This document shows, one piece after another, positions 1 to 17,158 of a stretch of DNA of 64,000 nt (position 1 is its first letter; each line of letters begins with the position of its first letter). This DNA is from Zygnema circumcarinatum SAG 698-1b. Taxonomy: Eukaryota; Plantae; Zygnematophyceae. The notes beneath the pieces are model-generated. The model saw only the letters and a program-made list of their open reading frames with translations, did no database searches and was not told the origin of the DNA. The stretch is from contig CM074816.1 in the NCBI GenBank assembly GCA_037447605.1, forward strand, positions 1,330,525 to 1,394,524. The letters run 5' to 3'. Made by a program: the position numbers and the translations under genes.

Positions 1-1472
1 TTTGTTACGCACTTGGTTGTTTGGGACAAAATGCGTTGTCTCGCTAAAAATAGGTACTTATTTGTTGAAACGTTAGTCTTGGAGCAAAACGCAAAAGCAC
101 CCGACGAGTTAGTAGGGCCTACCACTGACGAATTGCGTGACCTACAGTCGCTTGTATAGAAGTCCAAAGGTGTAGATATGATAGAACGCATTGAACCACT
201 ATAAATCTGCGCTAGCTTGTGAGCTGCTCCAGTATAAGTAGTCTCAGCAGAGGATGCTTTCATCTTCTTGAGCTGCGCCACAAGCACTTTTGTAGCAAGC
301 TGCGCTAACTTTGTGTTAATAGCTGATCTACGTTGGGTGGCCTTGAGTCGAATGCGTTTTTTCACTCGTAGTCGCTTTTCTAGTTTATTAGAATGGTTGA
401 ACTGTTGTTGGTTGAATTTGTGTATTTTCACCCCAAGAAATTCCACATTACCTGAATTAATGTGCCTAATTTGAGTGAAGTCCACTTGTATTTTAAGGTT
501 ATATTCTAGAAATTGTGTAATCCGGTTGCAAATATGCTTAACAAGTGCAGCGGAGCCTGCGATGCCCAGCAAAGCTTTGTGGCCATACCGCACGTAACGC
601 ACCTTGATGTAGTCTGTATCGTTGTAGTCAGTCGGTGTAAACCCTAACCGTGTAGCTAAACGCTTCTGTCTTAATAGAACAGCTGATTGTCTATTATTGT
701 TTAGCACATACTGATGTTTAGCATGACAATCCACATTTTGGTTGTATTCCAGACTGAAGTGGCGAGTCTTCTTGTTAGTATCAAATTGTCTACTTATACT
801 GTCAACTTCAAGGTCCACCGCATGAAGGTATATGTTCCACAGCAAGGCACAGAACTCATTGCGTTTGTTGAAATGCGTCAGTTCACACTCAGAGTAATCT
901 GTGTTGTTTACGTCGGAGATGCTAACTAATGAACTTAAGCACTCATTGCTTAAAAGCTGATGCATCAAGTACAAAAAAGCGGGATCATTTATTTGCTTAT
1001 TCATTTCAGCAATAAACCATTTCAACTCAATTGTGCAAAAACGATTACACAAATGAACGCTGCTTTTGCTTCGCTCCTTTGTAGAATTGTTTTGCATGTC
1101 CAATTCTACAAACCAAGAAATTCCACGCCAATGTTGCTTTATTTGTTTGAGTGCCAAATGACTACCTTGATCGACGCAAATATGCGGTGTCTTGAAAAAT
1201 TTACCTTCATATATATGCTCAAGTACCAACCTAAGCGGCCCTCTTGGAAAGTTGGTCGATGTGGTGCCTCTTTTCCGCGCTTGGAGAAGCAAGAGGAGCC
1301 TGAAAGTTGCCGTGGAACCTTCTTGCAGGATAACTCGCACAGATCGGCCGACCACCTTCCAAGCGTGGGTCGCATGGAGCTCGTCTGTGCCTCGGACGTT
1401 TGCCTGCTTCCTGTACACTGCGGATGGACTAAAAGGCCTTAGTAAGCGACCCTTTCCTCGGATTGTAGGTCT
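1..1472 (-). CDS. MatR-like group II intron maturase / degenerate reverse transcriptase (3'-truncated by window edge)
   Basis: Manual translation shows a stop-free minus frame from 1472 to the window edge (~490 codons). Motifs: RLVLEHIYEGKF...LALKQIKQHWRGISWFVELDM (RT2-3), INDPAFLYLMHQLL, LLWNIYLHAVDLEVDSI (RT4), DYIKVRYVRYGHKALLGIAGS (RT5), RITQFLEYNLKIQ (RT6), NVEFLGVKI (RT7), KLEKRLRVKKRIRLKATQRRSAINTKL (MatR-like post-RT segment). Recognisable homology ends near 1232; the start is unresolved. Confidence 0.85.
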
Positions 1473-1828
1473 CTAGGTCGACTACTTTGCTTTTTCTATC
1501 GAATATTGGAATGTGGTTGAATTTTTAGGTTCTCGATCGTGAATCTCAGGGCACCTCTCCATTGCGCACATCCGTTAGGATACTTTTTGGACCCTGGCAA
1601 GGGAGGGAGAGAAGGGAGGAGGCAGAGGAGTGAGGAAGTACACGGAGGATTAAGCAACTGCATTGACGGAATCTCTGAGGTGGTCGGTTGCAGATCCCAT
1701 TAGCAATGTGGGATACGACGCACTGGATGGAATAAATTTCCTGGATCTGTCAGTATCAAGAAGCGTGTCGGATCTTCCTCTCCAATCAAATGTCAACATT
1801 CCTGGAAAGTGGTGCTTCAAGTTGTCAG
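1251..1828 (+). CDS. Putative upstream exons (~1251-1441, 1694-1828) of the LRR-protease-LysM gene
   Basis: Donor A|GTAAGC at 1441, acceptor TTGCAG|AT at 1693, donor CAG|GTAAGG at 1828 and acceptor GTGCAG|TC at 2628 are all phase 1 and give a stop-free join into the Pro-rich exon. No domain recognised and no start codon found. Confidence 0.45.
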
Positions 1829-2628
1829 GTAAGGCTATGCTGCAATTCTTTTTGTTTTGGCTTATCTTCGTCCTAGCAATGCACGTACGGTAACAGAAGT
1901 CAGATCAGAATTACTCTGTGCAGTGATAATTTTCGCTTCTCTTCCGAACATTATATTTTTTTTTGCAATGAAAACGAGATCAGACTTTCTTGCATTATGC
2001 GCATGTGCGGAGTGGGCTTGGATAAGTTTCTAAATGCCGGGAAAGAGTGTAATTCCCACGATGATAAACGGGTCAACGTGAGCACTTGATTGGATGTTCC
2101 CATGGAGTCTGCTTGCGGTTCATTCCATTCTGGACTTGCTTAATATCTCTAGGGAACACTGACTCAGAGTTTTTCAAGGAGAAAAAAATGGTCTCTTTGA
2201 CGTCGTACTTCATTTTAACTCTATCGAGGTAGGAGAAGGATCTAGTCTGTACGCTTACACTTTGAAGGCGTCTGTGACATGAATCTATTCATCCATGTAC
2301 GGATATGGCGTGTCGGATTGCCCTCGTGTCACTTTTCCTCAAGAGAGATCAGATCAGACCAAAATTTTCCTACCTGTAAAACCTCCTCTGATTTCGTAGA
2401 AGTAGGCAAGAGTGCCCCGGAACTACGCAGAACCGTTTTCCTGAAACCAATGTTTCTTTGACGGCAATCTATGTAGGACTAGAAATGGCTTGATTCTTTT
2501 CGACTTAAACTCCGTTTTAATTCTCGGACTTTTAGAACGATATAAGTGGAGCCATACTCTTGAATGGATAGCTTTTGCTGAAGAGTTGTCATTCATTATT
2601 GATTTCTTGTCGTTTCTTTACTGTGCAG

Positions 2629-17158
<14,530 letters not shown>

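Follow-up and report, generated by a model that had tools for sequence, protein, structure and literature searches.

The window, which is the whole stretch of 64,000 nucleotides of contig CM074816.1 of Zygnema circumcarinatum SAG 698-1b analysed here, opens with a maturase-like reading frame on the minus strand that is followed by exons of a gene on the plus strand (Table 1). In the translation of the minus strand of positions 1-1835, a frame of 489 codons runs from 1469 to 1 without any stop and remains open past the window start, in agreement with the original prediction of a stop-free frame of about 490 codons. Its absence from the list of open reading frames, also pointed out there, proved real, since that list leaves out frames running off an end, and this frame runs off the window start. 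However, only the 411 codons of 1235..1 are maturase-like, and the insert, as positions 1-1234 are termed hereafter, spans the RT2-RT7 region and the beginning of the linker.

Table 1. Features at the start of the window, with the evidence for each of them.
Feature	Positions	Strand	Evidence
Very probable NUMT: part of an organelle group II intron maturase ORF	1..1234	-	LtrA match; 50% identity to P0001; organelle-depth contigs
Junction of insert and nuclear DNA	1234..1235		Contig departure at 1234; X1 record 6; GC shift from 40% to 56%
78 further open codons in the same frame	1236..1469	-	Nuclear intron and antisense-exon sequence, outside the maturase
Host-gene exon	1329..1441	+	Spliced 5' to an exon not in the window; contigs of X7, X10 and X17
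Next host-gene exon	1694..1828	+	Joints 1441>1694 and 1825>2626 (cut +3), both GT..AG

Among PDB chains, the sole phmmer match of the frame is LtrA, the Lactococcus group II intron-encoded protein (E 5e-11, in two stretches). The alignment pairs RYVRYGHKALLGIAGS with KYVRYADDFIISVKGS of LtrA, and places YGHK where LtrA has YADD; the same replacement appears in the alignment with relatives, so that the claimed loss of the catalytic motif stands on both alignments. The motifs LEHIYE, WF.ELD, NIYLH, YVRY, and H..S....FLG follow one another in the alignment with relatives, as expected from the predicted order of RT2-RT7, and the stretch PQGSVLSP of a Coleochaete protein (P0012) is missing from the window frame, in line with the predicted loss of PQG. 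Thus, the catalytic YADD and the PQG that together mark an active RT are both lacking, as they are in the closest relative, a protein of Zygnema cf. cylindricum (P0001). Scans of the window frame with Pfam and NCBIfam gave no RT or maturase match, because the frame is too diverged and is devoid of domain X. Pfam RVT_1 stayed below detection on this frame even at E=1 and, therefore, recognition of the RT rests on LtrA and the close relatives. By alignment to P0001, domain X would fall beyond the window start, since the frame ends at about residue 351 of that protein plus 63 unaligned residues. Group II intron domains, proposed as a possible flank of the frame, were not found by an Rfam scan of positions 1-5000 with E up to 1. 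This null result is to be expected, because the intron loses its upstream part at 1234, and domains V/VI, on its downstream side, would fall outside the window.

The 78 codons upstream of the homologous part do not belong to the maturase. They contain no ATG in the translation, and homology to P0001 is absent before query residue 69. They are rich in Arg, Ser, and Thr, happen to be open, have a GC content of 56% (vs. 40% in the maturase-like part), and overlap the first plus-strand exon of Table 1.

Similarity of the insert to a high-copy organelle sequence

Public sequencing runs carrying positions 1-1500 of the window were sought, and contigs from four such runs, each from a different study, were placed on positions 1-3600; identity to organelle sequence was read from these Logan contigs and their depths, and not from a mitogenome record. 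Coverage in run X1 is even across exons, introns, and intergenic DNA, and this run, therefore, represents genomic DNA. Its contigs over 1-1234 show a word depth of 5000-5737, and those over 1205-1784, 1791-2978, and 2999-3600 show depths of 33.9, 26, and 32.1, respectively. The abundant molecule stands about 150-200-fold above nuclear depth, contig depths serving here only for the contrast between neighbouring contigs of one run and giving no exact copy number. The high-depth contigs are letter-identical to the window over 1-1083 and differ from it by G>A at 1084, C>T at 1100, A>G at 1196, and an additional AAT behind 1179. These three substitutions and one 3-base indel leave an identity of about 99.5% over 1-1234. 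The insert is a near-identical copy of a high-copy organelle gene, and near-100% identity to mitochondrial DNA, which the original prediction had named as evidence against a nuclear maturase, is what the high-depth organelle contigs display. The source molecule is most likely the mitochondrial and not the plastid genome, as judged from the relatives of the maturase described below. The alleles of the window at 1084-1196 are absent from all contigs placed, contigs being prone to drop rare variants. Other high-depth contigs share just 31-37 nt with the insert (416-447, 579-615, and 873-903) and diverge on both sides; these shared stretches probably represent short repeated sequences of the organelle genome, or points at which contigs branch because of other copies.

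All three substitutions between the nuclear and organelle copies are non-synonymous, and the indel corresponds to one codon lost from the nuclear copy, which shortens a conserved H-G-F-R-P stretch. The nuclear copy has Phe92 where the conserved "FL" has Leu, and it carries Asp at residue 124, like most relatives, where the organelle copy carries Asn; since Asp124 looks ancestral, at least one of the changes may have occurred in the organelle copy. Four differences do not suffice for a selection test, and are what neutral decay would give. All four lie within 151 nt of the junction (1084-1196) and none in 1-1083, an arrangement with a probability of about 2e-4 under a uniform distribution. This clustering could reflect error-prone end-joining at the time of insertion, or an interior that was polished toward the abundant organelle reads.

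The contigs that cover the insert depart from the window at 1234 with identical letters (TCGCTCTATGGAGAATTTGATTTTGAGGTA) in all four runs. In the maturase frame, this continuation reads PQNQILHRAI followed by RLVLEHIYEG, and matches PRDKIIQSAIKITLEHIYEG of the Coleochaete protein P0012. As the continuation prolongs the maturase frame upstream and bears the RT2-like motif of the relatives, the abundant molecule holds a longer original ORF, and the copy in the window is cut inside it. The nuclear copy thus has neither the N-terminal part of the source ORF nor a start codon, and the idea of a 5' exon with a presequence finds no counterpart: no ATG precedes the homologous part of an ORF that is cut short relative to the organelle copy. 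X1 record 6 (580 nt, depth 33.9) spans 1205-1784, with 30 nt inside the insert and 550 nt in the nuclear flank; its reach into the insert is one nucleotide short of the bridging rule, and its support is good but not long-range. Lying at nuclear depth, this record shows the junction at single-copy depth in an independent data set. Nuclear genes stand on both sides of the insert, whose left end lies outside the window.

The host gene and the transcribed copy

Runs X7, X10, and X17 show exon-only coverage with spliced joints and appear to be RNA runs. In their contigs, exon 1329-1441 follows on 91-513 extra letters lying ahead of 1328 (the longest, of 476-513, being those of X17 and X7), and the last 30 of those upstream letters were not found in the window. 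The exon has a canonical acceptor (cttcttgcag|) and a canonical donor (|gtaagc), and its joint to the next exon occurs in three runs. That next exon is in turn joined to 2629 onward, the extensin-like start of the neighbouring LRR-papain-LysM mosaic gene. Translated one by one and not as a joined model, the exons 1329-1441, 1694-1828, and 2629-3042 have open, phase-compatible frames. In the RNA contigs, at least one exon from outside the window is spliced ahead of these three. The model of the mosaic gene, at 2629-17158, is probably longer at its 5' end, and this extension might reach the NIDO-domain sequence located 4.2-5.4 kb before the window. Assuming a colinear gene, the upstream host exon would lie before the window start; in that case positions 1-1328, including the entire insert, would constitute an intron in which the maturase frame is antisense. 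Some contigs of X7 and X10 depart at 1830 on the plus strand with other letters (TATGCTCGCATGCAACC...) and do not join 2629, pointing to alternative use of another downstream exon or to a related transcript.

Over 1-1234, the contigs of the three RNA-like runs show the organelle allele at each of the four sites and extend for more than 330 nt into the organelle sequence past 1234. None of their contigs bridges 1234/1235 or carries the nuclear alleles, contigs being able to hide rare variants. The proposed check on expression thus revealed organelle alleles followed by the organelle continuation, and not a nuclear transcript: the expressed copy is the organelle gene. RNA editing is ruled out as the source of these alleles, as the same ones are present in the DNA run X1.

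Relatives of the maturase

A word-based protein search with the whole frame gave seven relatives, the best of which, P0001, is a 609-residue protein of Zygnema cf. cylindricum named "maturase-related". The two share 50% identity over 361 aligned columns (query residues 69-426 and P0001 residues 14-351). P0001 has no PQG, carries YGKQ for YADD, and contains domain X at 465-559. A search with P0001 itself added P0012, a protein of 861 residues from Coleochaete scutata in which PQGSVLSP and YVDD are retained, together with a liverwort (Pellia) protein that resembles maturases and several intron maturases from metagenomes. Another relative, P0002, sits among the cox1 intron ORFs of a mitogenome and is uninformative for MatR. 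In a maximum-likelihood tree whose members are algal, liverwort, and metagenomic maturases only, with neither land-plant MatR nor nMAT, the window frame groups with P0001 as its sister (100/100), and Coleochaete branches next (100/99). The branch of the window frame (1.05) is about three times longer than that of P0001 (0.32), which indicates fast evolution of the mitochondrial ORF of Zygnema circumcarinatum. In the RT3 region (frame residues 124-143), the organelle maturase has an insertion of 13-19 residues (NNSTKERSKSSVHLCNRFC) that is absent from P0001 and from Coleochaete.

The resemblance to MatR noticed in the original prediction concerned the segment LEKRLRVKKRI...RSAINTKL. Neither land-plant MatR nor nMAT was recovered by word-based searches with the whole frame, with the whole of P0001, or with frame residues 285-415, the region of that segment. 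The nearest named atlas cluster is a streptophyte "Maturase R (Fragment)" (0.94, 176 shared features), which is a lead rather than a test. Together with the name of P0001, this lead weakly suggests a MatR-like assignment. Feng et al. (PMC11096116) used GeSeq to annotate the Zygnema cf. cylindricum SAG 698-1a mitogenome, and the matR-style name of P0001 probably stems from this annotation; the same article cites MT040698 and OQ319605, organelle genome records of Zygnema circumcarinatum. A long maturase frame has been described by Zumkeller and Knoop in nad4i461g2 of Zygnema circumcarinatum, and this intron belongs, with nad1i728g2 (the host of matR) and cobi399g2, to the F17 family, being a paralogue of the matR host intron (PMC10012718). 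It is also a candidate for the intron that hosts the source gene. The supplements of that article contain no statement of which Zygnema intron carries an ORF of the type seen in the window. The Coleochaete scutata mitogenome contains 26 group II introns (PMC10012718).

Origin of the insert

It is highly probable that positions 1-1234 are a recent NUMT that holds part of the mitochondrial maturase gene of the same alga, truncated at its head, in antisense orientation within an intron of a nuclear gene. A fragment of the mitochondrial gene would have been inserted backwards into the intron of the plus-strand gene, presumably by end-joining, and would be removed together with the host intron, without any role as a gene. 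The RT-dead features (YGHK for YADD and the loss of PQG) belong to the mitochondrial source gene, and the nuclear frame is open only because the copy is young. A NUMT of this type is an ordinary event of an already-known kind, and not a new nuclear splicing factor. The mitochondrial source gene is transcribed, and presumably works solely as a splicing maturase, by analogy with MatR and MatK. Of the two readings offered by the original prediction, that of a recent NUMT agrees with the near-identical organelle contigs that diverge from the window at 1234, and that of a selected nuclear maturase of the MatR lineage does not hold. The argument that an intact frame combined with strong divergence implies selection also fails here, since the divergence is that of the mitochondrial gene and the nuclear copy is young.

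Three other explanations have to be weighed against this one. The insert could be part of a functional nuclear maturase, nMAT-like or derived from a matR transfer of the Pelargonium type, which would be transcribed from the minus strand and imported to splice mitochondrial introns, with its start and presequence supplied by an upstream exon or by the 78 open codons. [quoted passage not shown] However, an identity of about 99.5% to the organelle gene leaves no time for selection to shape the copy, which is truncated inside the ORF, has no ATG, and lies antisense in the intron of an expressed gene, with its 78 upstream codons overlapping an exon of that gene on the other strand. Moreover, no RNA contig crosses 1234/1235 or carries the nuclear alleles, and the differences from the organelle copy are three non-synonymous substitutions out of three and a codon lost at a conserved site, so that a functional nuclear maturase appears very unlikely. 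An assembly artefact, in which mitochondrial reads were wrongly joined to nuclear sequence and no insert exists in the chromosome, is improbable too, if marginally less so. Organelle reads exceed nuclear ones about 150-fold, and the letter identity over 1-1083 is such as filling or polishing with organelle reads would produce, but the independent DNA run contains a contig at nuclear depth (33.9) with 30 nt of insert and 550 nt of flank, and the window departs from the organelle sequence at four places next to the junction. In addition, the assembly carries at least 8.9 kb of further sequence with nuclear genes left of the window, and the splicing of the host gene skips the region cleanly.

It could also be argued that depth alone does not name a compartment, and that the abundant molecule is plastid DNA or a nuclear repeat present in many copies instead of the mitochondrial genome. 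This is scarcely credible, as the closest relatives are the "maturase-related" protein of Zygnema cf. cylindricum, which bears the product name of matR and whose species has the GeSeq-annotated mitogenome mentioned above, and the protein of Coleochaete scutata, with its intron-rich mitogenome, and other relatives are found in cox1 introns. A dispersed nuclear repeat is further contradicted by the single continuation past 1234 observed in every run. Thus, what these observations favour is the recent NUMT, with the mitochondrial genome as its source.

It is hardly to be expected that the insert is the raw material for the first step of a matR-like transfer; separately, and with greater likelihood, Zygnema mitochondria would have evolved an RT-dead, maturase-only protein. 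In such a transfer, the nuclear allele would be transcribed at a low level, in antisense, from within the host intron, and a start and a targeting signal could come from the 78 open codons. PQG and YADD are lost in the mitochondrial maturase of both Zygnema circumcarinatum and Zygnema cf. cylindricum and are kept in the Coleochaete relative, which dates the RT decay in this maturase lineage within the zygnematophytes. An RT-dead Zygnema protein with an RT-intact Coleochaete sister would parallel MatR and MatK independently. The locus also calls for caution, as young organelle inserts show intact-looking frames, and transcription of the organelle original lends them seeming support in RNA-seq. 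Therefore, sequence at least 99% identical to organelle genomes should be masked before gene prediction or scans for nuclear transfers.

Compared with known systems, the source gene is closest to P0001, which shares the loss of PQG and an altered YADD (YGKQ) with the window frame. Coleochaete P0012 differs in keeping PQGSVLSP, YVDD, and the full N-terminal RT0-RT2 region, and the copy in the window, unlike both proteins, is a fragment that lacks the N-terminus and, as far as the window extends, domain X as well. The likeness to land-plant MatR (mat-nad1i728g2) is that of a mitochondrial intron-borne maturase with a reduced RT. Angiosperm MatR keeps YADD. With nMAT1-4 and the nuclear matR of Pelargonium, the locus has in common the presence of maturase-derived sequence in nuclear DNA; however, those genes are expressed and have start codons, presequences, and a long independent divergence, none of which applies to the copy in the window. 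Its features are instead those of NUMTs: near-identity to the organelle copy, an abrupt nuclear junction, a truncated source gene without a start codon, and a location in an intron with which it would be spliced out. From typical NUMTs it differs in nothing essential, although its differences from the source cluster beside the junction and its cargo, a maturase ORF, makes the open frame look gene-like.
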